From: Piromyces finnis finn
Lineage: Eukaryota > Fungi > Neocallimastigomycota
Length of the DNA: 64,000 nt
NCBI GenBank assembly: GCA_002104945.1
Contig: MCFH01000002.1
Location: 310,001 to 374,000, forward strand
Direction of reading: 5' to 3'
Below the pieces are notes generated by a model, which made no database searches, had not been told where the DNA came from, and was given only the letters and a program-made list of their open reading frames with translations. The first letter of the stretch is position 1; each line of letters opens with the position of its first letter. Positions 1 to 16,615 of this stretch are shown here, piece after piece. A program made the translations under genes and the position numbers.

Positions 1-1
1 C

Positions 2-3000
2 TTTTGTCAGAAGAAAATAGAAGAATATAACAATTCTCCAGAAGGTCAAAAAAGAAGAATAACTACAATTTTAACTCCTGAAACAATAAAGAAAATAAAA
101 CAAATTATTTTTGGTTTATTGGCAAATACCCCAATGATTATAAAAGGTTTTACTTCTGCTGGAAAAAGTTTCAATGCTATTGTAAGTTCTGTTATTCATG
201 GAGGTCAATCTCCTGTTTCAATAGTCCTTTCAGAAAATACAACAGTAGAAGATTTGTTAGGAAAATACATTTTACAAAGAAAAGAGTCATCAATGATGTC
301 TTTTGTTCCAGGTGTATTGTTAAAAGCTTATATTGAGGGAAAAATACTTATTTTAGATGAATGTGATTTAGCCAAGCCTGAAGTTTTATCTTGTATTTTA
401 GGATCTTTATCAAAAGACGAAATTACTGTAAATAATAGAATTTATAGAAAAACAAAAGGTTACAATGTTATATTAACTATGAATGGTGAAACAGAAGGGT
501 TCACTAGTACTCAAAGAAACGAACTCAATTTAAATATTTTATCAAAATTTGTTATCATAGAATTTGATAAAATGAGTAAAGAAGAATGTGAACTTATATT
601 TATGAAGCTTATGCCTAATGCTTATAAACAAAATGTTCCTAATTTTGTAAATTTACATAATAGGATGTTAGAATATTCACAAAAGACAATTGATCCTATT
701 GTTACCTTAAGAAATTTAAAAGCATGTATTTATTTATTGAAAGTTAATATACCAGTTAGAGCCTCGGCTGAAATTGCTTATTCAGGAAGATTTCCTATTG
801 ATGAAAGAAATGAATTTAATGATATTCTTGGTAACTTTGGAAGTGATGATATTGATAGTAATATTAAGAAAGAAATAATTAAAAGGTTTGATGAGTATAA
901 TTTATACTATAATGACTCCTATTTAAAATGTGCTTACTTAGCATTGTCGGCATGTAAAGCTGGTCTTCACCCTCTTTTAATTGGTAAAAATGGATCAGGA
1001 TTAACAGAATTAGCTAAATTTGTTGCTTGCAATTATTCTATTAGTACTGATACATTTTTAAGTGAATCTAAAAGGACTAATGTTGAAGTAGTATGTCTTG
1101 GTTCTGAAACATCAACAGATGATTTAGTGGGTTGTTTCCAGCCAATATTATGTAAAACTGAAGATTTAACCAAACTTATTTCATGGGTAGATGGTCCAAT
1201 TTTTAGAGCAGGAAAAAGTGGAAATCCTGTAATATTAGATGGAATAAATTGTGCTAAATCACAAGTTATAGAATATTTAAATCCATTGTTGGAAGATAAT
1301 TCAGTTTTTAATAATGTTAAATTTAATGTAAAAGAAAAGGGCGATGAAGAATATGTTAATATAGAAAAAGGCTTTATAATTATTGGTACTATGAAGGTAG
1401 AAGAAGGAATAGAAAAGATATCAAAAGCTTTGATGAATAGATTTGTAGCTATATATTTGGACGACTTTTCATTAAATGCTGAAGTAATTGAAAAAATAAC
1501 ATATTTAACAGTTAAAAAACTTGAAAATAAAAATAAAAAAAGTTTTGAAGTAGATGACACACTAACTAATAATTGTGATTATAATAAGATTGAAAATGAA
1601 AGTTTATTAGAAATGGAGGATGAAAGAATTGAAAGAGATGAGGAGGAGGATGAAATCACTTCAGAATCAGACTTTGATGAAGAAGAAGATGGTCAAGGTA
1701 TTGTATTTTCAGATTCAAATGAGGAAGAAAGTGAAAATGATAAAGAAGGTGAATTTAATAACTTATCACATTTTACTAACGAAAGAAATAATGCCAATAT
1801 TTCTTCGGAATATTCAAATGATAATTGTGAAACAAAGGAAGAAGACATTCCTAATTGGTATAATATGAACAATTTTAATAGTATAAATATAAAAGAAATA
1901 GTAGAACTACTTAAAAATGTTGAATTTAAAAATATTAAGACGTTAATTAAAACAATTACTAAATTATATTATATTATTCAAAGAACTAAAATGTCTGGTT
2001 CTGATTCTTATACTTTTTTAAAATTAACAGATGATATTTTTGATTTAAAAAATATAGATAAGTTAATATCAGATGTATTAAATGATAATGAAAAAGGCAG
2101 TAATATATTTTTCTTTAATAATAATAAAATAGGTAATGCAAAAAAAATGATATTATCATTAATTTTATCTGATCTTTCTTGTTCTCCAATATTTATACAA
2201 GGAACAGCAGGCACAGGAAAGTCTGTAGCAGTAAGACATTATGGCTCGTTTAGAAAATTCAGAAATAGAGATCCAATATTAACCATTAGTTGTAGTTCCG
2301 AAATGACTTTTGAACAATTTATTGGAACTTATAGTTTTAGAAATACATCTTTCCAATTTATTGAAGGACCATTATTAACGGCTATGAGGAATGGTGAACC
2401 TATTCTTGTTGATGAATTTAATTTATGTTCTGAAGAAGTACTTCTTAGCTTACTCCCATTATTGAAGGCTGAGATTAATGATAGTATCCAATTAAAAGGT
2501 GTTCCATATAAGGTTAAAATTAATCAAGGTTTTGTTTTTATAGCTACTGGAAATAATGATAATGAGTCTGGTAGGAAAAAATTACCTAATTCAATATTGG
2601 ATGAATTAATAAATGTAAAAATTTCAAATCCATCTTTAGAAGAATATAAAGGATTAATTGATGAAATAATAAATAATGAATATAAGGAGTGCAGTAGGTA
2701 TATATCTTCTGATAATATATGTGATATTGTTGAAGTAGTTGAATCAGTGGCACAACAGAGTTTCACATTAAGACATATCAAAATTTTATTAAATAGAATA
2801 AAAAGATTTTGTACTGAGGAATTAACATGCTTAGAAATTTCAAACGAAGAATATAGAAAAATACCAGTTGCCTATGTAATAATAAGTTTCATAATTCCAA
2901 GTTTAAAGGTAGGTAAAGAGAGAATAGAACAATTAGTTGAAAAGATCGGTATTATTACTAATATAGATAGTAAAGAATTATTAGAATTTATAAAATCTGA

Positions 3001-6000
3001 AGCTATAATAGTTTCTAGGCAAAGTAGATATTACTTGAAAAAGAATTATATTAAAAAAGGGAAAATAATATTAAGTACATCTTTAAAGAAAAACTATCCT
3101 CCAATTATTTTACAAACTTATTTTTGGATTCGTATGTCATGTTCATTAAATTTTGATAGTCCTTCCGAAGAAACTCTACTTTTAGTTGGTGAAACTTCAT
3201 ATAAATCATATATATTGGAACAATGGTTGGATTCTTTAGAAAGTGATTCTTATGAAGAACATTTTGTAACTGGAAATACTGAAACACAAGATTTAATAGG
3301 TATCTCAACTTTAGAAAATAAAGATAAATTGTCTAATTATATTGATTCTCTTGTAGAAAAAGCTATATTATATTTACATGGAGATAGAAAGAATATTAAT
3401 GGAGCAAGAGAAGAGAAACTTAGATCAATTATGAATGAACTTGAAATAGATGAAAAGGGTATTATCCATAATAATAAAAACAATGTTTGTTTAGAATTCA
3501 TTTATAGATGCATTAAAGAGTTAATTAACTTAGAAGAAAATTATGATAAATCAATGGGAATAAAAACAGTTACATCATTTAATTTAGGTATAATATCTTC
3601 TGCTTGTATCTTTGGAAAAAAATTAATTATAAAAGGAATAAATCAAATTTCATCATCAGTACTAGAAAGAATAAATTCTGTGTTAGAATACCCAAGAAGT
3701 CTTGTCCTGAATGAAGATACTCAAGGGATATTTAATAATCAAAAAATATTTAAAGATTTATACAAAAGCAATAGAAGAAGTATTCCAATCTCTAATAAAT
3801 TTACATTATGTTTTACTTCAAGAGAAATAATTAATGGAAAGTTATCTGAGGCATTTAAATCAAGATGTTCTACAATTATTTGTCCTAGTTATGATAATTC
3901 ACTTTATCTAGGCATTATACAAATAGATAAATATGAAAATTATAGTTTAATTGCAAAATCTATTATAACAAAAAATGAACTTCAGAAAGAAATAATTAAA
4001 TTATACAATAAAATAACAAACAATAAAATTATAATTCCCGTACTTTCATTTATAAGATGGTGTAATACTACTGAAAGAATTAGTGAATATTTGCAAGATA
4101 CAAGTTTTAAAGAAATAGTAGGAATAGCTGTACTCAGAAGCATATTTGATGGATTTGAACCAAACAATAGAACTAGAATTATTAGAGAATTATTACTAGA
4201 ATACCTACCTGAAAATTTATATAATTTAATAGTAAATGATGAAAATAATGATGATTATAAACCCCCATTTGAAATTGAAAATAAAGATGAGGATTTTAAA
4301 TATGTTAAGTCAATTTATAGTGGAATTAAATTACAAGTTACCAATCCAAAAATTGATAAATTAAATGAAATAAAATGGACTAAATCAGCATCAGATATGG
4401 CAGATTCAATTTTAACTTCACTAGTAGCTCATACAATGTTAATATTTGAAGGTCCTCCAGGAAGAGGTAAAACAGCAATAGCAACTATTATTTATGAATT
4501 TCTAGATATAGATTATAGAAGAATAAATTTATCACCTTCTACAACAGAAGAAGATATTTTTTCTAGAACGGTCCCAAAAATTACTAATGACAGTAATGAG
4601 AAAAATATTAAAACGGAAATACAATTAGGACCACTTTTACAAATAGTACAAAAAAGCTCAAACTCAATCAAATATTGTAAAAATGCTTTATTATTGGATG
4701 AAATTAACTTAGCATCTAATGAGTTATTAACTCAATTATATTCTTTTTTAATTTCAATATTTTATAAAAAAGAATATCATACTTCATATGGCAAAAACTA
4801 TAAAATAGGAAAAATTGGTGTTATAGCAACAATGAATGATGCAAAATTATCAAATGCAAGAACAGCACTTTCATCAAATATTTTAAATCTTAGTCATACC
4901 TTTAAATTATCAAACTATGAGCAAAAAGAAATGATGATTTTGGCTAACAATATATTAGGAAGAGAAAAGTTATTCAAAAAAAAAGAATTCATGATTAGAA
5001 CATTAAATTGTTTCTTAAATTCACAAAAATATATTAAAAACAATTTAGAGATAGGAGGATTTACTTTAAGAGAAATTTTAAAGATAGGTGAGTTTACTAA
5101 TAAATGTCCTGATGTACCACTTGATGCTTTGTTAGAAATAGTATTATGTTCAAATATGTCGGATGAAGATGCCTATAAATTTAAAGAAGAAAATCAATTT
5201 ACAAATACTCTTAGTAATATAACACCTGATATTAAAAATAATAAACTACGTTTTAAAGATTTGATAGAATATGATTTAATTAGATTTAGATGTGATGGAC
5301 CATTAAAAAGACAATTTACATCCCCCGAGAAGGATGCTTTAATGAAAATATTAATTGGACTTAAAGCAATGAGAACGATTTTATTGTCCGGAGATATTGG
5401 AACTGGAAAGACATATATTGTGGAAACGTTGGCTGAAATAATTGGGGTAAAGTTAAATATAATTCAATTTAATGCGGAAACATCATCATCAGATACTATA
5501 GGAAAAACTGAAATGAGTGTAGATTCAAATGAAGAATATGATATTAAAAAGGAATTAAATAAATTAAAAAAAATATTAATAAAGGAAAAATGGCCTAGGA
5601 TAACTTCTTTTATATGTATGGATTTTTATAATTCTAAAGATATAAAGAAATTTTTTGGAAAGTTATGTAAAGAAAATCCAATAAGTAATGAAGCTAAAGA
5701 TCAATTAGAAATTTATTGTTGTAAATTAGAAAAATATTCTACATTATCATTTACTAATTTTGAATTCAAAAAGTCATTGCTACTTAATGCTATGGAGAAA
5801 GGAGAGTGGATATTAATTGATGATCTTAATTATGCACCACAAGAAATTGAAAGATTAATGCCATTATTAGAAGAAAGCCCTTCATTAACGATTTTTGAAC
5901 AAAGCCCTCAAATTAAATATTCAAGAAACTATATTGAGGATACTGATACTATAAAGCATATACAAATACATAAGAATTTTAGACTTTTTTTAATTGCATC

Positions 6001-9000
6001 TAATGAAAATGCTTTATCTACAGCTATAAAATCAAGATGTTTATGTGTTAGGCTTAAGCCTTTTGAAAAACCACAGCATTACTCTGAACTTATATATAGC
6101 TGTTTAAGTAATTCTAACCTTCCTGAAAATGATATTATTTCAATTGCAACACATTTAGGTAGGGCATTTCATGATATTAAAAATAGTGAAAAGGAAATAT
6201 ATTTCTTACTTAAAAATTTGAAATTGACACCAGTCAACTTAGTTTATCTTTCAAAGGTTTTGTCTAATTATTCAGAAGTGAATGGGAAAACTTTATTTGA
6301 TGGTATAAAATTCTGTATCTTTTCAATGTTTAAGAATAAAAATGAGCAAATTAGCAGATTTAAAAAATCATTATCTAGTGAAATAGATTTTAATATTTCT
6401 ACTTATAATACCGGGATAATGAAAGATAAAAAGTATATTCTATGTAAGATTGAAATAAAAATATTAAGTTATGCTAAACTATTAAAAAATAAAGAAATAA
6501 GCAATAATGATATTGATAAAGAATTTAATGATAAATTGAATTCATTATTTAAAAAAAAATACAAAACTAAAAGAGTAGCAAACATAAAAATTAATAATGA
6601 AAAAGAAAATGAAATAATTGATTTTATAAAAAGAGCTAAAAATGACATAATTAATAATTTAGAACAATTTACATTAGAAGATATCGAAGAATATAAAGAA
6701 TATATTGAAGAAGTTTTATTTATATTAGAAAATTTTATTCCTGAAGAAAAAGAAATATATGATTATTTATACTATCTTAAATATTTAAATTTATTATTAA
6801 AAGAATTAACTTCAATTAAAAACAAGAAAGTTAAGGGATTAAAATTAAATACTATTGAAAATTCAAAAGATTACTTTTTACAATTTGGAGATTCTAAAGA
6901 GGAAGCAGAAGAAAATGCTTTGAAGGTGTATTGGTTTAGAAATGTATTAAATGGTTTTGATATCTTTATACCAGAAAAAGTTTCAACAAAAAATTTAAAT
7001 TTATCAATTATTAATATATATTATAATCATTATGCTGAAGAGTATAATACATTACCTTTGGATTATACATCCAAAATTAAGATAGAACCTTATATTTATT
7101 TAAAATTCCTAGAAAACATTAAATTACGAAAAATATTAAAATATTTTAATTTTACCATTAATGATGGTTATATAGAAGAAATATTTTATACTTTAGTTCA
7201 TTACAAAAAATCTATAGAAATTCATACTTCAGTTAATGAAATATTAGAAATTATAATGTTTATTGGAGAAAACTCTAAATTTATTATTGAATATAATAAT
7301 GGATACTGTATTAATAAATATAAAATAGAAGAGTTAAGAGACAACTTGAAATTGAATGAATTATATAGTAAATATAAATATAATGTAAAAGACATATATA
7401 AGAAAAATATGGATTATATAATTCCATTAAGCTTAAAAAAAAATAATAATTTAATAGGAGGAAATATCTATTGGTTTTATAATATTTTCGCTAAAGAATA
7501 TGATCTAAAGTCTGTTATTAACAATAATATGCTATGTGAATTTAATAAAGCAATTGAAAATATATTAAGATTAAAAACATATAATACAAAAAATATGGAA
7601 GGAATATGGAATAATGAATTAAAAGATATATTAAATAAGGGCTATCAATTAATCTATTCTTTACAAGGTTTGAAAAATATTCTTTTGGAAGAGGAAAATA
7701 AAGAAGAAAAAATAAAAGAATTCATCGAAAATATAATGACTTTAAAAAAATATAAGCTATTTCATATGTGTGAATCAAAAAATGTTATTATAGAAAATAT
7801 TATTAATTTAATAGATTTAATAAAAGATTTTTTTAAAAGATATGAAATTAATATATGGGATGAAATGGAATTATTTAAAAATACTTGTATTATATATTTA
7901 GAAAGTGAAAAATTGAAAGAAAAGTATGAAACAGAAAAAATAAAATACGTTAATCAATTAAACCAAATTTTATTAAAATTAAATAATATTTGTAATCAAG
8001 ATAATAAGAATAAATTTGATTCTATAGATAAGGAAATTAGAGGATTATTAAAATTTATAAATAATACGGATATAGAAGATATAGCCAATAAAATCAGAGA
8101 AATTGAAAAGCAATTAAGTATGTTTAAAATAGCTAATGATGATAATATTAATAAAATGTCTTCGAAAAAATCACAAATATTAAATGACACTAATGTTAAT
8201 AATAATAATAATGAAACTATTAAATCAGAAGTATTAGTGAAATATTCTAAATTATGTAACATTATTAATAGAATGAAAAAAACCAAGGAACAACAACTGC
8301 TTATAAATAATATGTTTATGTTTTGTGACATTTCTACTTTAGATAATTTTATTAATACATATAAAGTTTCGTTTATGAAATGCTTAGATGATAAATCTGT
8401 TTTAGAAGTTTTAATTAAAGAGTTAAAACATTTAGTGAATTCATTATTAATTTCGGATATAATTAATATATATAATGAATATTCTCAATATGAGGATTAC
8501 TTAACATTTATTAAAGAAATACTTTCAAATAATTTAAATTATATAAAAATACTAGGTAATTATTTTGAGGACGATGCTTATATATATTTACCAAAACTTG
8601 ATATTATTGATTTAAAATATTGTGTTCAATATGGTATTAAAAATAAAGAATACGGTTCATTAATTAAATCAATAACACATGATTTAAATATTAAAATTCG
8701 TAACCCAGAAGAAGGCGAAACAACTGAAGAATATTTAAAATATTTAATTTATCAATTTGATAAAGATATTGATTTTTCTCATAGTATAGAAGAAATAATT
8801 TTATCTCTTGATAAAAAACATATAGAAACGGTTAAAAATTTATATAATGCTGCTAAAATAGTAGAATTATTCAAAAGCATTAAATATGATTATAATAAAG
8901 AATGGCTTATGAAAGATGTTGATGAAATGAAAAACTCATACTGGAAAGAGCCAGGTAAAATTCTTGTTAAATATAAATATAGTTCTTTGCTCCATTTTAA

Positions 9001-12000
9001 TCAATTTAGTGATAAGAATATATTTGATGGGGAAAAAATTATTGCGAAATCTCTTTATGCAGCACATGAAGCATTAAATTTAAAAAATATTCAGTATAAA
9101 AAAGGTATCCTTAATGATATTCTTACTGAAGTTTTAAATAATATTTATAATGATACTATAAATAATTATAATTATGGATACAGAACTATCTTATTTTATA
9201 ACAATAACATATATAAAGATAATGTTGGTGAAACAATGGTCTCAATTATATATTCTGCATTTGAAATATTATTACAAATAGATGATATTGTAGAAAATTA
9301 TCATGTTAAGAATATTATAAAAGAAATTATTAATAAATTTATAGTTAATTGTATAAATTATGAATCACCGGATTTTGATAATATCGATATTACTAATATT
9401 TGTAATATATTAATAAATAATTCTTTGAGTAAATATAATTTAATGTATAAAAACAAAAAAGAAGAATATGAAGAAGAAATTATAACATATAGAGAAAAAT
9501 TTATAACTATTGTCGAAAAATTAAAAGAGAAATATGAAAATATTTATGAAACAGAGAAAAGCCAGTATTTAAAAAAATTAGAAGACTATAATAATAAAAT
9601 ATATAATTTAAGAGAAAAATATAAAAAGGAATTTACATTTGATAAGTTTATTACTAATATATATACAAAAAAAAATAAAAACTATAGCGACTGCGACCAA
9701 GATAATAAAGAAGCCAAGAAAAAATATACGGAATATATGAAAAAAAATACTGAAGATGAAGAAATTCTAAAATATTACAAAATAAATATAAGTAAACCAT
9801 TCGATGAAAATATTGATGAAAAAATAAAATCATTTAATAAAGAATGCAATTCATTACTATTACTAGAGATATACGATATAAATATTTTTGAATATAAAAC
9901 TATAATAAATAGTAATAAAATAACTAATTTTATAGAAGATGATAGAGATAAGCAATTATATTTAAAGTATGAAGATAATTTGAAAGAAAAAATAAATGAT
10001 TATATTAACATTATTAATGACAATAAAAATTTCATGAAAGAAATAAAGAATATAACAATACCCTCATATAGATGTTCAGAGTATAATATTGAAGCTGATG
10101 TTAAAACATTGATGGAATGGATTAAAAAGCTATTAAATTGTAAAATAAATATGAAAATTAATGAATATAAGGAAATTCCTCATAATAAAGAAACAAACAT
10201 TACAGAAACAATAAAAATGTATTCAACAGACACAAATTGGATAAATGATAGTAAAAATAGACCAAGTTTCTTACTTGATAATATTAATATAGATCTAGGT
10301 ATTTACATTTTAAAGCAAATTCATGTAAATAATGTTGGTTCTGTAATTTTTAACAATACCTGTTCATATCCAATTACTTTTGAATTAGAGCAAAGTGAAA
10401 AGAATGGAATCAAAGCATATACAAATGGAAATACAATACAACAAAATAAACCATTGAATATTAAATTTAGATTAAATAAAAATCCCGATACTAATGAGAC
10501 AATAAAATGTGAATTCTATATTAAATTAATTAAAAATAATGAAGAATGTGACAGATGTAAAGTAGTAGCTTATTTAAATGTAATTCCATTTTGTATAAAA
10601 TTTAAATTTAATGAGAAATACAATATAGATGAAAATAACAATTTAAGTATAAATCATTATATCAATGATTCATTAGAAATTATGTATAATTATCCAGGAA
10701 ACTATTCATCTAATAACTTAGGTATTATAATAAAACAAAATGAAGATAATTGTAATAATGATTTAACTATTGAACAACAACAAGGTATAATAAGATCGAC
10801 ATTTAAATCAAAATTACAACAACCTATTGTAAAATGTTCATATAATAAAAAAATTAACTTAAATAAATTACAATTGATCAATTTAAACCTTAATTTTCCA
10901 ATTCCAACATATTTTGGTCTTGTTGTATATGATGAAAAAGAAATAAATATGCAATCCATTGATGTTGAAAAAGATAATCCAATAACATTATACTTATTTA
11001 ATATGAGTGCCACTTCAATAAATATTAATTATCATTATAACAATAGAAATATCGAATTAATGGAAAAAACTGAAAATATAAATCCTGGTGAAAAGAAGAA
11101 ATTAATATTTAAAGTTTTAAAAGAAAGTTATTCTGAAAATCTTTATTTAGGTATTAATAACAAGAATATTGATATCAATGTTATTAGTTTACCTAAATTA
11201 ACAAAAGAAAAACATTTTATATTAAAATATAAATATATATGTTGTAATCTTATAACTAAAAGTATACAAAATAAACTTAAGTGTATTATAATTGATAATC
11301 AATATAAAATAATCCAAAAAGATAAAGTAGAAACCATAAAATATAAATACGATAGTCTTAGCTCTTGTTATCTACTATATAATAATAAAGTATGTGATAA
11401 AGTAATTAAAGAAGAAAGTAACTATAATTATAATAAAAATGTTAATTGTTCTGTTTATGGATTCAGTAATAACAATTTATGTACAAATAAAATTTATAAT
11501 GTAGATATTGTTCTAAAATATGAAAGTAAAAATAATCATGTATTTTCTACAAATCAAATGAAAGAATTTTCAAAAATATTAAAAGATGAAAAATTTAAAA
11601 ACGATCTTCAATCTAATGATAGAGAAAGAATAGAGGCCTCAATAAATAAATTAATAGATGCAGAATTGAGCCTCAACGAAAATATTAATGAAAATATTAA
11701 AAATATAAAAATTGATGAAAGTGAAAAAACATCCATTAAAAATATAATAGTATATCTTATGAAAATGTCGAATGATTATTTAATTGATAACTTTATTGAA
11801 CAATTAAAGAAATGGTTAAAAGAAATGTATAATAGAAGTATTTTACTTCCATATTTTAATGTAAATACTGAATTGAATGAGAATATCAAAGATTTTTTGA
11901 ATAAATTAAAGTATATTATTAGTTTTGTAGATATAGTTGTTAATCCTATGATATTGAGCGAAGATATTTTGGACTATATCAAAAGTAGTTCTAATAGTAA

Positions 12001-15000
12001 TATAAAATTAATTAGTAATTACAGAGAATTAACTAACATCTTTAATCGGTGCTTTAGATATGGTCTTGAAAAAGATAGTGAAACTTCAGAAATAATATTT
12101 TATGATGGTAAATATGTTAAAGGTGATGTCTTTGATGCGTTTGATAAGCAAATTAAAAATTCGAAAATGGATAATCAAAGTTATAATATTGATAAAATTA
12201 ATAATTTCATTAAAATATACAGGAAAGAAATCCAAGAAATTATAGATAAAATAATAAATAATAAGGTTAGTATATCAAATTTACTTAATATATTAGATGA
12301 ATGCATTGACATAATTGCCAAATGTCCATTAATATTATCAACAATAGATAATAATAAAGAACTATTCAATTACTGTATTTCAAATAGTCAAAGAATATAC
12401 GATTTTATATATAAATTAACGAAATCACCAATTAATGAAACACATTTTTCTAAAAGAATATGTAAAACTCTTTATGCCATCCATAATATATTATCACAAT
12501 ATGAATTTTTTGATTTATTTACTACTATATCAAGTCATTTTGATTCTTCTTATATAAAAACATATGGTGCCATAGTTCAATGTGAATTACCTTTTGATAA
12601 CACTTACGAAAATGATATTACAGCTAGTAAAAAAATGAATAAAAAATGTAATTCATACGAAATAAATAGTAAAAGAAGAAATGCCCATTTTAGTAAGTCA
12701 CAATTTGCTTCAAGAGAATATGAAAATTATAAAAATGAATCTTTTAATAATACAAATAATGTCGAAAAACCTATATTTGTTAAAGAGAATAAAGTTGATC
12801 ATAAAAATAAATTTACCAGAGTACTATCAGATGAGGAAATAAATAAACTATCAGTTCCATACTTTAATCAAAACATTGAAGAGAATAAGGAAAAAGATAG
12901 TAATGATGACAATATATTAGAAAATAACATTTCAGATATTTTACAAAATCAATGTAAAGATATAAAAATATCAATGGATATATTGGAAGCAAACTTTGGT
13001 AAAATAACACCAGAAAAATTTTTAGAAATGATATTAGAAAGAACAGCATGTCTTAATCAATCATTATCTGAAATTAGATATTCAATGGTAAAAAGAGATG
13101 GTTTAAATAAAGATGGTTCATTTAATTATTATGATGAATGTTCAGAAGCATCATCCTACATTCAATCGATCATTTCTAATAGTTTAAAATCTGAACTAGA
13201 ATTTATAGATAATAATAATATACTATTACCTTATAGTGTAGTGGATAGTTATGTTGACATAGCAGTAGACATTACTCATATGTCACCAATTCAAAGAATT
13301 GCTAGTCTTGTAATTTCAACAGGGTTATCCATTTCTTTGAGCAGCTACGGGATCAAAATAAGAATTTCTGTTTTTGGAGAAAGAAATGGTGTTTGGATTT
13401 TTTCTAATGATTTTGAAACAAGTATTGAAATCCAATTATCAAGATTAAGAGATGCTCTTTCAAGTAAAAAAAGATACATGTCTATCCCGGGAGATGCCTT
13501 ACTTTCATTGAAGAAGGATTGGATTGAAAAAGAATATGAAAATAAAAAAACAAAATATACATCAGTATTAATATCCTCATTAATTTCACCTCAAGTTGTA
13601 AATAAAGTGGTTAAATGGGATGAAATCATTTCAAATAATATAGTTGTATTTGGACTAAAATCTGATTTTAGTGAGGAATTTATGAAGAGACATAAAGTAT
13701 ACGAACAATTATTACAAGTTCCATCAAAAAATAATGAAAATATAACTCAACAATTTTTAGACCCAATGAACGTGATAAATCAGAATGAATCAGAAAGTGA
13801 ATTACTTGAAATATTATGTAAATCATTAGTAAGATCTTGTAGATACAAATTAGAAGAGGACAAAGATAACTTTAAAGAAACCAAAATTATTGTAAATAAC
13901 AATCATAATGATTTGAATGAAGAAATATCATTAAAATATCTAATTGAATCTATTCTTAATAACAGGAACGATGTAACATTCTTTGCTCAAAATAAAGAAC
14001 ATACCACTACTGAAGTGTATAATTTGAATAATAGTTTTGTACAAACAAAGACACAACTTCCTTCAATATATGAAGAAACCCAAAATAGTATATTATGTGA
14101 TAACGGCAGCATAGGAGTTCTTAAAGATGCTGCGGAAAAGTTATTAAAGACTTCATTTGGATTAGCCTTTCCACCAAATGCTTCTTCGAAAAAAGTCCCA
14201 ACCGCATCAGGAGGTACAATATCTATACCAGCTCTTAAAAAATGGATTGCTTCAGGATTCACGTATAAAGAGATATTTTTGAAAAAAGCTGGAAAAACAA
14301 AAAGAAAATATAAAATTACTGTAGCCATTGATTTCTCATCATCTATCCATTTATCATGTAATTATTCTCATGCTATTTCAACCACCTTATTATTATTAAT
14401 AGCCCCATCAATTCTTCAAGATAATGAAGAAATTAGTATAGATGTTATTATAAGCACTATTGATGGACCAAAAATCATGTATATATCTTCCAAGGCAAAT
14501 ACTTTTGAATCTATTTCTTATATTCAATCCATTATTAATATTATTGATAAAGAAGCTCCTAAATTCTGTACACCAGGTAATACCTTAAATGCTGCTTATC
14601 AATTACAATTAGAAAAAAGCGGTATAAACATGGGAAGAAATATATTCTTTATTACTGATGGTTATGTCACCTCCAGAAAAGAGGTTATGTTTGCTAATTC
14701 GATTATCAGTAGTTGTGAAAATTCTGGTATTGAATTAATGACATTTGGTGTCGGTTCATATCCTTATGGAATCAAGCAATTGTATCCAAAATGTTGTTAT
14801 GCACCATCCATACTAAATCTTGCTGATGCTCTTTCCTATTTATTTTCTTTATCAAGAAATCCAGCATGTGATAAAATTATACCTCAAGTCATTATTAGTT
14901 CTATATCTGAAGAGCTTCAAACGAAGCTTTCCGAAATGATTAACCAACCACCGGATAATACAGAATTACAAGAAAGTATAGAAAATACATTAATGGATTA

Positions 15001-16615
15001 TATTGAATGGATAGGAAATAACAATACCATGAAACTTGAAAATATAAATAATATGAAAATATACAGTAGAAATCCTGAAATTGAGCCATACTTTGATGGA
15101 ATGTTTAAGGGATTTAAAATTTTGGTGGTCATCTTGTATTTGGGAGGATATGAATATAACGGAAAAATCAGGGATCAAAATATCACCATACAACAATTTT
15201 ACTCTGGTACTGGTATGGCATTAAAAAGAAAAGGCTTTGAATACAAATTAGTTTTTAGTTATGGTGATGCTATTAATGAACTTACTAAATCTGAAGAAAA
15301 TCGATGTCCATACATAGAAACATGGGTATTCTGTAGTAGTGGGGATGGATCTTTGCCCGACATCGCTATTGATAAAGACAACAATAAGATTATTCCATTT
15401 TTCGAATGTATTACTTCATTTAATAATAATGGCGGTGGATTATTATTGTTTTGTGATAATGAACCCTATACTTTAGAAGCCAATATATTACTTTCTGAAT
15501 ATTTGAAATTTGAAAATGAATATGGTCATAATGTAAAACCACAATTTTCCATGAAAGGAAATTACAATCAACCTGACTTTGAAAAAAAAAATATTACATC
15601 ATTAGAACCTAACGATACAAGAAAAAATGGCAGATTTAAATCAGATGTTATGCTTCCATCACCTGGAAAATGTAAGGATAGAATGTCCCTAAGAACTGGA
15701 TTAATAAAGTTTAATGAAGGAATTACATTATCCTATGCTGAATTTACAGGTGACTCAAAGACCTATTCACCATTTACCCCATTTGCCTATTTATCCGATG
15801 AATCCAATGAACGACCATTTATTTTGTATTATGATCCGAAGATGAAAAATCCTACCATAAATCAAGGTCCAATAGTGATACATGGTGGTTTTACCTCAGC
15901 ATTTTATGACTTTACGTTTGACGGTACTGGTAGACTTGTAATTTCAATTGCATGTTGGTTAGTGAGGTATGAAGAAAGATTTCATCAACAAATGCAAGAA
16001 GAGATGAGGATAGATATGGTTAAAAATATACCTTCAATAGACATTCCAGAAAATAAAAATGAAAATTTCACAAGATGGGTTAATAGCAATAGAAATCTCT
16101 ATTCTATTATTATTTTAGATGTTTCAGGATCTATGGAAGGTTTCTATTCACCACTTATTAATATGTCCAATTCCATTATTAAAAGACAAATGGAAAATCC
16201 AGAAAATAAAGGAACTATTATTTTCTTTGCTACAACAGCCAAAGCAGTACTTACAGAAGAATATAGAGAATTAACAATTGGTGATATACATAAAGCTAGA
16301 GTTGGTAAATGGACTAATTCCTATTTAGCTTTTTCAGAAGCCAAAAAATATATTAATCCTACTAATCAATATGATGATAAAAGATTATTATTCCTAACCG
16401 ATGGAAAGTGTGATTGTAGTAGTCTCAAACCATTATGTGATGATATAGCAAATGCAGGATTTTCAATACATATTCTTGGATTTGGAGAAGAAAAAACTTT
16501 CATTAATTTAAAACCGTTTGTAAGAGATAACAATAGAAACAAAGGAACATTCCAAGTTTATAATAATTTTATTGAAGTTGCCGATTCAGCTAAAAAGACA
16601 TTTGCAGCTGAATAA
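2..16615 (+). CDS. Giant midasin/Rea1-like AAA+ ATPase with six AAA modules and three vWA modules; 5'-partial, more than 5530 aa, intronless in this window
   Basis: The ORF track starts at a TTG at 119, but the frame is open back to base 2 (FCQKKIEEYNNSPEGQKRRITTILTPETIKKIKQIIFGLLANTPMIIKGFTSAGKS), so the true start lies outside the window. Walker A-type motifs: GFTSAGKS (~146), GKNGSGLT (~983), GTAGTGKS (~2201), GETSYKS (~3188), GPPGRGKT (~4451), GDIGTGKT (~5390). Each is followed by a midasin-style Walker B segment (ILILDECD, VILDGIN, ILVDEFN, LIIKGIN, LLLDEIN, WILIDDLN). A midasin-type MIDAS lead-in is present (KKWIASGFTYKEIFLKKAGKTKRKYKITVAIDFSSS ... FITDG), as is a terminal vWA (IILDVSGSM ... 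FLTDG). Symbol withheld because the architecture departs from canonical MDN1. Confidence 0.9.
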   Translation, partial: FCQKKIEEYNNSPEGQKRRITTILTPETIKKIKQIIFGLLANTPMIIKGFTSAGKSFNAIVSSVIHGGQSPVSIVLSENTTVEDLLGKYILQRKESSMMSFVPGVLLKAYIEGKILILDECDLAKPEVLSCILGSLSKDEITVNNRIYRKTKGYNVILTMNGETEGFTSTQRNELNLNILSKFVIIEFDKMSKEECELIFMKLMPNAYKQNVPNFVNLHNRMLEYSQKTIDPIVTLRNLKACIYLLKVNIPVRASAEIAYSGRFPIDERNEFNDILGNFGSDDIDSNIKKEIIKRFDEYNLYYNDSYLKCAYLALSACKAGLHPLLIGKNGSGLTELAKFVACNYSISTDTFLSESKRTNVEVVCLGSETSTDDLVGCFQPILCKTEDLTKLISWVDGPIFRAGKSGNPVILDGINCAKSQVIEYLNPLLEDNSVFNNVKFNVKEKGDEEYVNIEKGFIIIGTMKVEEGIEKISKALMNRFVAIYLDDFSLNAEVIEKITYLTVKKLENKNKKSFEVDDTLTNNCDYNKIENESLLEMEDERIERDEEEDEITSESDFDEEEDGQGIVFSDSNEEESENDKEGEFNNLSHFTNERNNANISSEYSNDNCETKEEDIPNWYNMNNFNSINIKEIVELLKNVEFKNIKTLIKTITKLYYIIQRTKMSGSDSYTFLKLTDDIFDLKNIDKLISDVLNDNEKGSNIFFFNNNKIGNAKKMILSLILSDLSCSPIFIQGTAGTGKSVAVRHYGSFRKFRNRDPILTISCSSEMTFEQFIGTYSFRNTSFQFIEGPLLTAMRNGEPILVDEFNLCSEEVLLSLLPLLKAEINDSIQLKGVPYKVKINQGFVFIATGNNDNESGRKKLPNSILDELINVKISNPSLEEYKGLIDEIINNEYKECSRYISSDNICDIVEVVESVAQQSFTLRHIKILLNRIKRFCTEELTCLEISNEEYRKIPVAYVIISFIIPSLKVGKERIEQLVEKIGIITNIDSKELLEFIKSEAIIVSRQSRYYLKKNYIKKGKIILSTSLKKNYPPIILQTYFWIRMSCSLNFDSPSEETLLLVGETSYKSYILEQWLDSLESDSYEEHFVTGNTETQDLIGISTLENKDKLSNYIDSLVEKAILYLHGDRKNINGAREEKLRSIMNELEIDEKGIIHNNKNNVCLEFIYRCIKELINLEENYDKSMGIKTVTSFNLGIISSACIFGKKLIIKGINQISSSVLERINSVLEYPRSLVLNEDTQGIFNNQKIFKDLYKSNRRSIPISNKFTLCFTSREIINGKLSEAFKSRCSTIICPSYDNSLYLGIIQIDKYENYSLIAKSIITKNELQKEIIKLYNKITNNKIIIPVLSFIRWCNTTERISEYLQDTSFKEIVGIAVLRSIFDGFEPNNRTRIIRELLLEYLPENLYNLIVNDENNDDYKPPFEIENKDEDFKYVKSIYSGIKLQVTNPKIDKLNEIKWTKSASDMADSILTSLVAHTMLIFEGPPGRGKTAIATIIYEFLDIDYRRINLSPSTTEEDIFSRTVPKITNDSNEKNIKTEIQLGPLLQIVQKSSNSIKYCKNALLLDEINLASNELLTQLYSFLISIFYKKEYHTSYGKNYKIGKIGVIATMNDAKLSNARTALSSNILNLSHTFKLSNYEQKEMMILANNILGREKLFKKKEFMIRTLNCFLNSQKYIKNNLEIGGFTLREILKIGEFTNKCPDVPLDALLEIVLCSNMSDEDAYKFKEENQFTNTLSNITPDIKNNKLRFKDLIEYDLIRFRCDGPLKRQFTSPEKDALMKILIGLKAMRTILLSGDIGTGKTYIVETLAEIIGVKLNIIQFNAETSSSDTIGKTEMSVDSNEEYDIKKELNKLKKILIKEKWPRITSFICMDFYNSKDIKKFFGKLCKENPISNEAKDQLEIYCCKLEKYSTLSFTNFEFKKSLLLNAMEKGEWILIDDLNYAPQEIERLMPLLEESPSLTIFEQSPQIKYSRNYIEDTDTIKHIQIHKNFRLFLIASNENALSTAIKSRCLCVRLKPFEKPQHYSELIYSCLSNSNLPENDIISIATHLGRAFHDIKNSEKEIYFLLKNLKLTPVNLVYLSKVLSNYSEVNGKTLFDGIKFCIFSMFKNKNEQISRFKKSLSSEIDFNISTYNTGIMKDKKYILCKIEIKILSYAKLLKNKEISNNDIDKEFNDKLNSLFKKKYKTKRVANIKINNEKENEIIDFIKRAKNDIINNLEQFTLEDIEEYKEYIEEVLFILENFIPEEKEIYDYLYYLKYLNLLLKELTSIKNKKVKGLKLNTIENSKDYFLQFGDSKEEAEENALKVYWFRNVLNGFDIFIPEKVSTKNLNLSIINIYYNHYAEEYNTLPLDYTSKIKIEPYIYLKFLENIKLRKILKYFNFTINDGYIEEIFYTLVHYKKSIEIHTSVNEILEIIMFIGENSKFIIEYNNGYCINKYKIEELRDNLKLNELYSKYKYNVKDIYKKNMDYIIPLSLKKNNNLIGGNIYWFYNIFAKEYDLKSVINNNMLCEFNKAIENILRLKTYNTKNMEGIWNNELKDILNKGYQLIYSLQGLKNILLEEENKEEKIKEFIENIMTLKKYKLFHMCESKNVIIENIINLIDLIKDFFKRYEINIWDEMELFKNTCIIYLESEKLKEKYETEKIKYVNQLNQILLKLNNICNQDNKNKFDSIDKEIRGLLKFINNTDIEDIANKIREIEKQLSMFKIANDDNINKMSSKKSQILNDTNVNNNNNETIKSEVLVKYSKLCNIINRMKKTKEQQLLINNMFMFCDISTLDNFINTYKVSFMKCLDDKSVLEVLIKELKHLVNSLLISDIINIYNEYSQYEDYLTFIKEILSNNLNYIKILGNYFEDDAYIYLPKLDIIDLKYCVQYGIKNKEYGSLIKSITHDLNIKIRNPEEGETTEEYLKYLIYQFDKDIDFSHSIEEIILSLDKKHIETVKNLYNAAKIVELFKSIKYDYNKEWLMKDVDEMKNSYWKEPGKILVKYKYSSLLHFNQFSDKNIFDGEKIIAKSLYAAHEALNLKNIQYKKGILNDILTEVLNNIYNDTINNYNYGYRTILFYNNNIYKDNVGETMVSIIYSAFEILLQIDDIVENYHVKNIIKEIINKFIVNCINYESPDFDNIDITNICNILINNSLSKYNLMYKNKKEEYEEEIITYREKFITIVEKLKEKYENIYETEKSQYLKKLEDYNNKIYNLREKYKKEFTFDKFITNIYTKKNKNYSDCDQDNKEAKKKYTEYMKKNTEDEEILKYYKINISKPFDENIDEKIKSFNKECNSLLLLEIYDINIFEYKTIINSNKITNFIEDDRDKQLYLKYEDNLKEKINDYINIINDNKNFMKEIKNITIPSYRCSEYNIEADVKTLMEWIKKLLNCKINMKINEYKEIPHNKETNITETIKMYSTDTNWINDSKNRPSFLLDNINIDLGIYILKQIHVNNVGSVIFNNTCSYPITFELEQSEKNGIKAYTNGNTIQQNKPLNIKFRLNKNPDTNETIKCEFYIKLIKNNEECDRCKVVAYLNVIPFCIKFKFNEKYNIDENNNLSINHYINDSLEIMYNYPGNYSSNNLGIIIKQNEDNCNNDLTIEQQQGIIRSTFKSKLQQPIVKCSYNKKINLNKLQLINLNLNFPIPTYFGLVVYDEKEINMQSIDVEKDNPITLYLFNMSATSININYHYNNRNIELMEKTENINPGEKKKLIFKVLKESYSENLYLGINNKNIDINVISLPKLTKEKHFILKYKYICCNLITKSIQNKLKCIIIDNQYKIIQKDKVETIKYKYDSLSSCYLLYNNKVCDKVIKEESNYNYNKNVNCSVYGFSNNNLCTNKIYNVDIVLKYESKNNHVFSTNQMKEFSKILKDEKFKNDLQSNDRERIEASINKLIDAELSLNENINENIKNIKIDESEKTSIKNIIVYLMKMSNDYLIDNFIEQLKKWLKEMYNRSILLPYFNVNTELNENIKDFLNKLKYIISFVDIVVNPMILSEDILDYIKSSSNSNIKLISNYRELTNIFNRCFRYGLEKDSETSEIIFYDGKYVKGDVFDAFDKQIKNSKMDNQSYNIDKINNFIKIYRKEIQEIIDKIINNKVSISNLLNILDECIDIIAKCPLILSTIDNNKELFNYCISNSQRIYDFIYKLTKSPINETHFSKRICKTLYAIHNILSQYEFFDLFTTISSHFDSSYIKTYGAIVQCELPFDNTYENDITASKKMNKKCNSYEINSKRRNAHFSKSQFASREYENYKNESFNNTNNVEKPIFVKENKVDHKNKFTRVLSDEEINKLSVPYFNQNIEENKEKDSNDDNILENNISDILQNQCKDIKISMDILEANFGKITPEKFLEMILERTACLNQSLSEIRYSMVKRDGLNKDGSFNYYDECSEASSYIQSIISNSLKSELEFIDNNNILLPYSVVDSYVDIAVDITHMSPIQRIASLVISTGLSISLSSYGIKIRISVFGERNGVWIFSNDFETSIEIQLSRLRDALSSKKRYMSIPGDALLSLKKDWIEKEYENKKTKYTSVLISSLISPQVVNKVVKWDEIISNNIVVFGLKSDFSEEFMKRHKVYEQLLQVPSKNNENITQQFLDPMNVINQNESESELLEILCKSLVRSCRYKLEEDKDNFKETKIIVNNNHNDLNEEISLKYLIESILNNRNDVTFFAQNKEHTTTEVYNLNNSFVQTKTQLPSIYEETQNSILCDNGSIGVLKDAAEKLLKTSFGLAFPPNASSKKVPTASGGTISIPALKKWIASGFTYKEIFLKKAGKTKRKYKITVAIDFSSSIHLSCNYSHAISTTLLLLIAPSILQDNEEISIDVIISTIDGPKIMYISSKANTFESISYIQSIINIIDKEAPKFCTPGNTLNAAYQLQLEKSGINMGRNIFFITDGYVTSRKEVMFANSIISSCENSGIELMTFGVGSYPYGIKQLYPKCCYAPSILNLADALSYLFSLSRNPACDKIIPQVIISSISEELQTKLSEMINQPPDNTELQESIENTLMDYIEWIGNNNTMKLENINNMKIYSRNPEIEPYFDGMFKGFKILVVILYLGGYEYNGKIRDQNITIQQFYSGTGMALKRKGFEYKLVFSYGDAINELTKSEENRCPYIETWVFCSSGDGSLPDIAIDKDNNKIIPFFECITSFNNNGGGLLLFCDNEPYTLEANILLSEYLKFENEYGHNVKPQFSMKGNYNQPDFEKKNITSLEPNDTRKNGRFKSDVMLPSPGKCKDRMSLRTGLIKFNEGITLSYAEFTGDSKTYSPFTPFAYLSDESNERPFILYYDPKMKNPTINQGPIVIHGGFTSAFYDFTFDGTGRLVISIACWLVRYEERFHQQMQEEMRIDMVKNIPSIDIPENKNENFTRWVNSNRNLYSIIILDVSGSMEGFYSPLINMSNSIIKRQMENPENKGTIIFFATTAKAVLTEEYRELTIGDIHKARVGKWTNSYLAFSEAKKYINPTNQYDDKRLLFLTDGKCDCSSLKPLCDDIANAGFSIHILGFGEEKTFINLKPFVRDNNRNKGTFQVYNNFIEVADSAKKTFAAE

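Follow-up and report, generated by a model that had tools for sequence, protein, structure and literature searches.

A midasin-like AAA+ protein of Piromyces finnis in which predicted complete and degenerate ATPase sites alternate

The stretch of DNA analyzed here, hereafter the window, comprises 64,000 nucleotides of the Piromyces finnis genome (G000:C112:310001-374000, from an assembly of 56.46 Mb in 232 contigs), and it begins inside a giant gene that encodes six tandem AAA+ modules. The open reading frame is listed at window positions 119-16615; by eye it reaches back to window position 1, and the upstream DNA extends it a further 733 codons to the left, to C112:307803. The whole frame is stop-free over 6270 codons, and its first Met lies five codons in. 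At ~24% GC, ~0.09 stops per codon are expected in such DNA, and the absence of any stop over that length has an ln P of ~ -588. Residue numbers below refer to this full frame (window-frame residue plus 733). From the N to the C terminus, the product, publicly annotated as a hypothetical protein, has a pseudokinase-like domain, the six AAA_5 modules, a long linker region, and VWA domains. Pfam AAA_5 matches cover five stretches within the first 2200 window codons (E 5e-74), and the top PDB sequence matches are Mdn1 and Rea1, the first module aligning with Rea1 286-485 and the last with Mdn1 1870-2100. The P-loop, Walker B, sensor 1, and a trans Arg after helix 4 place the protein in the MoxR/dynein-related clade of AAA+ proteins (Pfam AAA_5).

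A first-pass annotation of the window had proposed that the odd-numbered modules retain Walker A and Walker B and lack an arginine finger, that the even-numbered modules retain the finger, and that Walker A and B are lost in modules 2 and 4 and altered to Asp-Asp in module 6. All 18 motif strings that it cited occur once each, at the places given there and in the single open frame, and profile alignments and homolog counts uphold each of these assignments. We took the motif columns from profile alignment to midasin, where the second Arg of RNRF (xxNRF) marks the finger, and scored them in 23-28 core homologs (38-70% identical). Modules 1, 3, and 5 have the Walker A Lys and the Walker B Glu in every homolog scored (23/23, 26/26, and 28/28 for each residue). 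At the finger column, module 1 has Lys in 22 of 23 homologs and Arg in the other, module 3 has Glu in all 26 (Arg 0/26), and module 5 has Leu in 18 of 28. The even modules carry a finger Arg without exception (25/25, 28/28, and 28/28). The Walker A Lys of module 2 is absent from all homologs (0/23; Leu or Val instead) and the Walker B Glu is present in 1/24. Module 4 keeps a Lys in a shortened P-loop, GETSYKS, which is one residue shorter than the GETGCGKT of midasin; its Walker B Asp has become Lys in 28/28 and a Glu follows in 1/28. Module 6 keeps the Walker A Lys (28/28) and has Asp rather than Glu in Walker B (Glu 0/28, Asp 28/28). The sensor-1 Asn alternates as well, being kept in modules 1, 3, and 5, mostly kept in module 6, lost or variable in module 2, and lost in module 4. 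The homologs thus repeat the alternating pattern and do not show random motif loss.

In Schizosaccharomyces pombe Mdn1, the second Arg of RNRF is the critical finger (PMC5116814). For midasin, two studies assign the finger of AAA(n+1) to site n (PMC5116814, PMC6286127), so the rule on which the first-pass annotation relied is documented for midasin itself. When 26 canonical midasins were put through the same analysis, Lys was found in every module, Asp-Glu in AAA2 to AAA5, and the Arg in AAA2 to AAA6, in agreement with the literature. Read by this rule, sites 1, 3, and 5 carry the full predicted catalytic set, and sites 2 and 4 lack the cis residues as well as the trans finger. Site 6 has the motifs of a P-loop site without the catalytic Glu and with Lys as its trans residue.

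In one sequence, the chance that three lost fingers fall exactly after the three Glu-less sites is 1/20, and the weight of the pattern comes not from this figure but from its conservation down to 38% identity and from a coordinated switch in the outgroup. In the outgroup sequences P0030 and P0032, the P-loop Lys of module 2 and an Arg in module 3 are retained, while module 5 has degenerated (Thr to His in the P-loop, Asp-Glu absent) and module 6 no longer has its finger. The finger therefore follows the state of the preceding site in clades of differing pattern, exactly as the n+1 rule predicts. The replacement residues can themselves be invariant, as with the Glu at the module 3 finger (26/26) and the Lys in place of the module 4 Walker B Asp (28/28); such residues may have taken on a new role, perhaps in latching the dead interfaces.

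Assignment of fingers to sites depends on the numbering of the modules. When family profiles were compared by hhalign with those of the 26 canonical midasins, modules 3, 4, 5, and 6 each matched best the midasin module of the same number (AAA3, AAA4, AAA5, and AAA6). Module 1 ranked AAA3, then AAA5, then AAA1, and module 2 ranked AAA4, then AAA6, so that odd modules match odd ones and even modules even ones; within the family, too, the odd modules are most alike and module 4 is nearest to module 6. Upstream, the 733 codons yielded no Pfam AAA match, and the 300 residues before module 1 gave hhalign probabilities below 1% against midasin and against modules 1, 3, 5, and 6; a seventh, upstream AAA module, which would have shifted the register, was rejected on these results. 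With collinear or odd-even matches to midasin and no AAA-like module upstream, the numbering from 1 to 6 holds.

AlphaFold models built with family alignments for the module 3-4 and 5-6 pairs are both confident AAA+ tandems, with predicted local distance difference test (pLDDT) values of 85.1 and 82.2 and predicted template-modeling (pTM) scores of 0.82 and 0.78, respectively. In all four modeled modules the P-loop follows strand 1, the Walker B Asp position lies at the end of strand 3, and the finger position is at or just past the end of helix 4, before strand 5. Structure and profile alignments therefore keep the fingers where they were first noted. The 5-6 pair superposes on dynein AAA1-AAA2 (Z 26.5, root-mean-square deviation [rmsd] 3.9, 505 residues) and on Rea1 1719-2331 (Z 19.7), and the 3-4 model aligns with dynein, Rea1, and Mdn1 over 730-820 columns at a TM score of ~0.5. 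Single modules fit NorQ and CbbQ closely (Z ~20, rmsd 2.4-2.8). Module 6 alone fits the whole of NorQ and CbbQ, and thus appears to have a complete small (lid) domain.

The Walker A Lys to Walker B Asp spacings of modules 1-6 (64, 79, 64, 143, 76, and 137) reflect inserts after Walker A in the even modules. These amount to ~75-85 residues of helices in modules 4 and 6, as bundles of three to four helices, and ~15 residues in module 2; the first-pass annotation had correctly called the latter short and had put the former somewhat too long, at roughly 90. It had also bounded the ring at window positions 140-6050. The motifs do lie there, but module 6 with its lid reaches ~6682 and the frame is open to the left edge of the window.

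The one close paralog of the gene lies on contig C1 of the same genome (G000:C1:2552571-2571329), is intact over 6252 codons, and is 63% identical in amino acid sequence. It shares the motif pattern, save that Walker B of module 2 is Asp-Glu. Ratios of nonsynonymous to synonymous substitution (dN/dS, Nei-Gojobori), rough in view of the AT bias, are 0.29, 0.27, 0.27, 0.25, 0.16, and 0.25 for modules 1-6 against this paralog. The dead modules are constrained as much as the live ones. Outside the modules, the acidic insert between modules 2 and 3 is the least constrained and fastest part of the ring region (0.54), and the linker has a ratio of 0.41.

The named homologs are all 'hypothetical proteins' of Neocallimastigomycota (59-70% identity). 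A second tier of homologs (38-44% identity) comes from metagenome contigs of ~21% GC (checked for P0025 and P0023), and a third, P0030-32, is 23-29% identical and includes one sequence from Tritrichomonas; P0030 and P0032 have Pfam kinase domains. The C112 protein represents an uncharacterized family of pseudokinase, six-module AAA ring, linker, and VWA domains, found so far only in Neocallimastigomycota and AT-rich metagenome contigs, without an exhaustive protein search having been made. We found no paper in the literature on this family. An assignment of the C112 gene as the midasin ortholog was rejected: the true midasin of this genome is a separate gene on contig C174, with a frame of 5487 codons, stronger AAA_5 matches, three AAA_lid_7 matches, and the canonical motifs. 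The C112 protein gave no match to the Pfam midasin lid families (AAA_lid_7 and related).

We consider it probable that the six modules form the motor ring of a mechano-enzyme resembling midasin but distinct from it, built as three enzyme-plus-activator pairs (1|2, 3|4, and 5|6). The AAA_5 modules of one chain would close into a ring in which the ATP site of each module receives its trans finger from the next. Sites 1, 3, and 5 would combine the P-loop Lys, Asp-Glu, and sensor-1 Asn in cis with a finger Arg supplied by modules 2, 4, and 6. Sites 2 and 4 would have lost their cis residues and likewise the trans finger of modules 3 and 5, so that the three pairs would be joined by nucleotide-free or static interfaces. 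At site 6, nucleotide is most likely bound but not normally turned over, as at AAA6 of midasin. By analogy with midasin, ATP turnover would be transmitted through the ~2500-residue linker to MIDAS-type VWA domains that grip and pull a partner, and the N-terminal pseudokinase might serve in targeting or regulation.

Several observations weigh against this interpretation. Hydrolysis at exactly sites 1, 3, and 5 is predicted from motifs, the homologs are interrelated and their counts are not independent events, and module 5 has Arg at the finger position in 8 of the 28 homologs. The odd modules also keep a conserved Arg ~10 residues before the finger column (QRN, GRK, ART). The structure models cover modules 3-6 only, and the contact between finger and P-loop that they suggest comes from superposition on dynein and Rea1, not from a measured distance. 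Slow ATP turnover is conceivable at site 6, whose P-loop and Asp-Asp are invariant and whose trans Lys is conserved. As to transcription, the one run found, of uncertain type, offers short, low-depth contigs, most of which continue into unlike sequence, and one odd joint.

The features of site 6 make it very likely a fourth nucleotide-binding site, judged by its motifs, and the three-fold symmetry is consequently imperfect: of the pseudo-three-fold ring first proposed, the completeness of sites 1, 3, and 5 stands and the strict symmetry does not. A ring with four working sites goes further, with site 6 also hydrolyzing, slowly or under regulation, on a trans Lys from module 1, to give an asymmetric set of 1, 3, and 5 plus 6. 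We think this unlikely. The conservation of the Walker A Lys and Asp-Asp of module 6 in 28/28 homologs, the mostly retained sensor-1 Asn, and the basic character of the module 1 finger residue in 23/23 (Lys 22, Arg 1) would suit it, as would the finding that ATP binding at AAA6 of Mdn1 is essential (PMC5116814). No homolog, however, has a catalytic Glu in this module, the finger column that would serve it lacks Arg (apart from that one homolog), and AAA6 of midasin (Asp-Asn) is regarded as binding only.

It is also improbable, in our estimation, that the ring is mainly a nucleotide-stabilized scaffold in which sites 1, 3, and 5 bind or switch with little or no mechanical cycling. Such a role has been proposed for RNF213, whose dynein-like ring of six modules has only two competent sites and low activity (PMC7311170), and the C112 protein has neither the lid families of midasin nor the H2 helical insert of AAA2 by which Rea1 is regulated (PMC6286127); invariance of the Glu, sensor-1 Asn, and trans Arg at three sites down to 38% identity nevertheless exceeds what binding alone would need. 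That the gene is a redundant midasin duplicate decaying into a pseudogene, as two dead sites out of six and its annotation as a mere hypothetical protein might suggest, has next to no credibility, and the first-pass annotation had argued against random decay: the 6270-codon frame is open at ~0.09 expected stops per codon, dN/dS is 0.16-0.29 in every module, with that of dead modules 2 and 4 (0.27 and 0.25) equal to that of live ones, the second paralog is intact, the replacement residues are invariant, and ~28 homologs share the pattern.

The preferred reading, a motor ring of three enzyme-plus-activator pairs, admits a bolder form that we offer tentatively and hold to be possible, if doubtful. 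In it, the invariant Glu of the module 3 finger position and Lys of the module 4 Walker B position would act as permanent latches on the dead interfaces 2|3 and 4|5, and the ring would have three non-adjacent firing sites and no sequential cycle. The proteins would then make up a family of their own in anaerobic gut eukaryotes, namely MIDAS remodelers that are coupled to a pseudokinase and whose cellular target is not the pre-60S ribosome.

Midasin is the natural comparison for the C112 protein. Both have six tandem AAA_5 modules (collinear with AAA1-6), even modules with H2 inserts, the same finger column, and a long linker followed by a MIDAS-type VWA domain, which in the C112 protein matches that of midasin weakly. 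They differ in that the active sites of midasin are 2-5, with 1 and 6 lacking Walker B (PMC5116814), whereas the full predicted sets of the C112 ring are at 1, 3, and 5. The C112 protein has in addition an N-terminal pseudokinase and a second C-terminal VWA domain, and it has no AAA_lid_7. The AAA2 H2 insert, which autoinhibits Rea1, is nearly absent from C112 module 2, and Rea1 is reported to lack AAA6S (PMC6286127), whereas C112 module 6 appears to have a lid. Midasin orthologs are single-copy genes of 60S biogenesis; here the canonical gene is on C174 and the C112 gene has a paralog on C1.

In its logic, the C112 ring would be closest to the alternating 3+3 ring proposed for Torsin with LAP1 or LULL1, in which a catalytic unit without a finger alternates with a finger donor without nucleotide motifs (PMC4358337); modules 2 and 4 would behave like LAP1. 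There is no sequence relationship, however, and the C112 units belong to one polypeptide and to the MoxR/dynein clade, with module 6 keeping its P-loop. The Torsin heterohexamer is itself a model and not a solved ring.

Dynein and RNF213 are, like the C112 protein, single-chain six-module AAA+ rings that mix hydrolyzing, binding-only, and dead sites. The competent sites of dynein, AAA1, AAA3, and AAA4, are described as contiguous and are not strictly alternating. Unlike the C112 protein, these two have a microtubule-binding stalk or an E3 module as tail or output, and in RNF213 the competent sites are contiguous (AAA3 and AAA4), with AAA2 binding only (PMC7311170). In the MoxR-VWA pairs NorQ/NorD and CbbQ/CbbO, an AAA_5 ring also acts with a MIDAS-bearing VWA domain (PMC9976466), but these rings are homohexamers with six equivalent sites and the VWA protein is separate.

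Alternation itself is familiar from the alpha3-beta3 ring of F1/V1-ATPase, in which three catalytic sites alternate with three non-catalytic nucleotide sites and the non-catalytic subunit supplies a trans Arg; that ring differs in its RecA-like fold, separate subunits, and rotary shaft. Coordination among the six sites of AAA+ rings, whether sequential, concerted, or probabilistic, has mostly been probed with engineered single-chain hexamers carrying dead subunits. The C112 family offers a strictly alternating live/dead arrangement fixed by evolution in one polypeptide, under purifying selection to 38% identity and beside a normal midasin. It is a natural construct with which to ask whether non-adjacent sites suffice for force in a dynein- or midasin-type ring, why dead modules are kept (as finger donors or as carriers of inserts), and how a trans finger co-evolves with the site it serves.

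Table 1. Features of the C112 ring gene. Positions are in the window unless a contig is named; aa, residues of the full frame.
Feature	Position	Strand	Details
Ring gene, in-window part	1..16615	+	single 6270-codon frame, start upstream at C112:307803
Kinase-like N-terminal domain	C112:307818-308900	+	Pkinase match below cut-off
Module 1	35..847	+	aa 745-1015; Walker A GFTSAGKS 146-169; Walker B LILDE 347-361
Module 1 sensor 1 and finger	LTMN 473-484; NILSKF 533-550	+	Lys in place of Arg at finger
Module 2	875..1597	+	aa 1025-1265; degenerate P-loop GKNGSGLT 983-1006, Lys to Leu
Module 2 Walker B and finger	VILDG 1229-1243 (no Glu); arginine finger ALMNRF 1427-1444	+	sensor-1 Asn lost
Insert between modules 2 and 3	1598..2104	+	aa 1266-1434; ~170 residues, acidic, low-complexity
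Module 3	2105..3097	+	aa 1435-1765; Walker A GTAGTGKS 2201-2224; Walker B ILVDE 2402-2416
Module 3 sensor 1 and finger	ATGN 2543-2554; SILDEL 2591-2608	+	Glu at finger, invariant in family
Module 4	3110..4357	+	aa 1770-2185; P-loop GETSYKS 3188-3208, one residue short
Module 4 Walker B and finger	LIIKG 3623-3637 (Asp to Lys, Glu to Gly); arginine finger AFKSRC 3851-3868	+	three-helix insert, ~84 residues
Module 5	4370..5317	+	aa 2190-2505; Walker A GPPGRGKT 4451-4474; Walker B LLLDE 4688-4702
Module 5 sensor 1 and finger	ATMN 4826-4837; NILNLS 4877-4894	+	Leu at finger here
Module 6	5318..6682	+	aa 2506-2960; Walker A GDIGTGKT 5390-5413; Walker B ILIDD 5810-5824 (Asp-Asp); lid domain
Module 6 finger	AIKSRC 6023-6040	+	arginine finger; helical insert, ~77 residues
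Inner VWA domain	14270..14902	+	intact DxSxS, DFSSS within 14321-14347, aa 5511-5515
Terminal VWA domain	16055..16612	+	intact DxSxS, DVSGS within 16109-16135; Pfam VWA_2 below curated cut-off

Coordinates of the ring and of the flanking domains are collected in Table 1. Beyond the ring, the inner VWA domain weakly matches the C-terminal MIDAS of canonical midasins (E 5e-5 to 1e-3, in a small set); nowhere else in the tail was similarity to that domain detected. No homology of the linker to the midasin linker was detectable by phmmer, profile comparison not having been made, and no long D/E-rich stretch was seen before the MIDAS-type domain. The acidic insert between modules 2 and 3 recalls the D/E-rich region of midasin but sits elsewhere. 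About 400 residues separate the two VWA domains with intact motifs (DFSSS and DVSGS), and the tail region at 13253-16612 also contains a degenerate VWA-like start (VDITHMS).

At the other end of the protein, the upstream 733 residues include a kinase-like domain that scores 25.2 bits against the Pkinase profile (cut-off 31.7; profile positions 20-246). The position of the catalytic Asp of HRD is occupied by LPT, TPT, or SPT in all core homologs. We regard the domain as kinase-like in fold and as a probable pseudokinase joined to the AAA ring. An Asn-Ser repeat follows it, and then ~280 residues without a match.

Other giant AAA_5 frames of 2200-4560 codons occur on contigs C156, C170, C204, C35, C164, and C135. 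They are not close relatives of the ring gene and are probably dynein heavy chains and other dynein-related ATPases. The public model of the ring gene itself, P0001 (6082 aa), splices out part of the in-frame Asn-Ser repeat as an intron, at aa ~324-465 of the frame (L003 ~8770-9200, where L003:7818-8900 corresponds to C112:307818-308900); the frame is open there.

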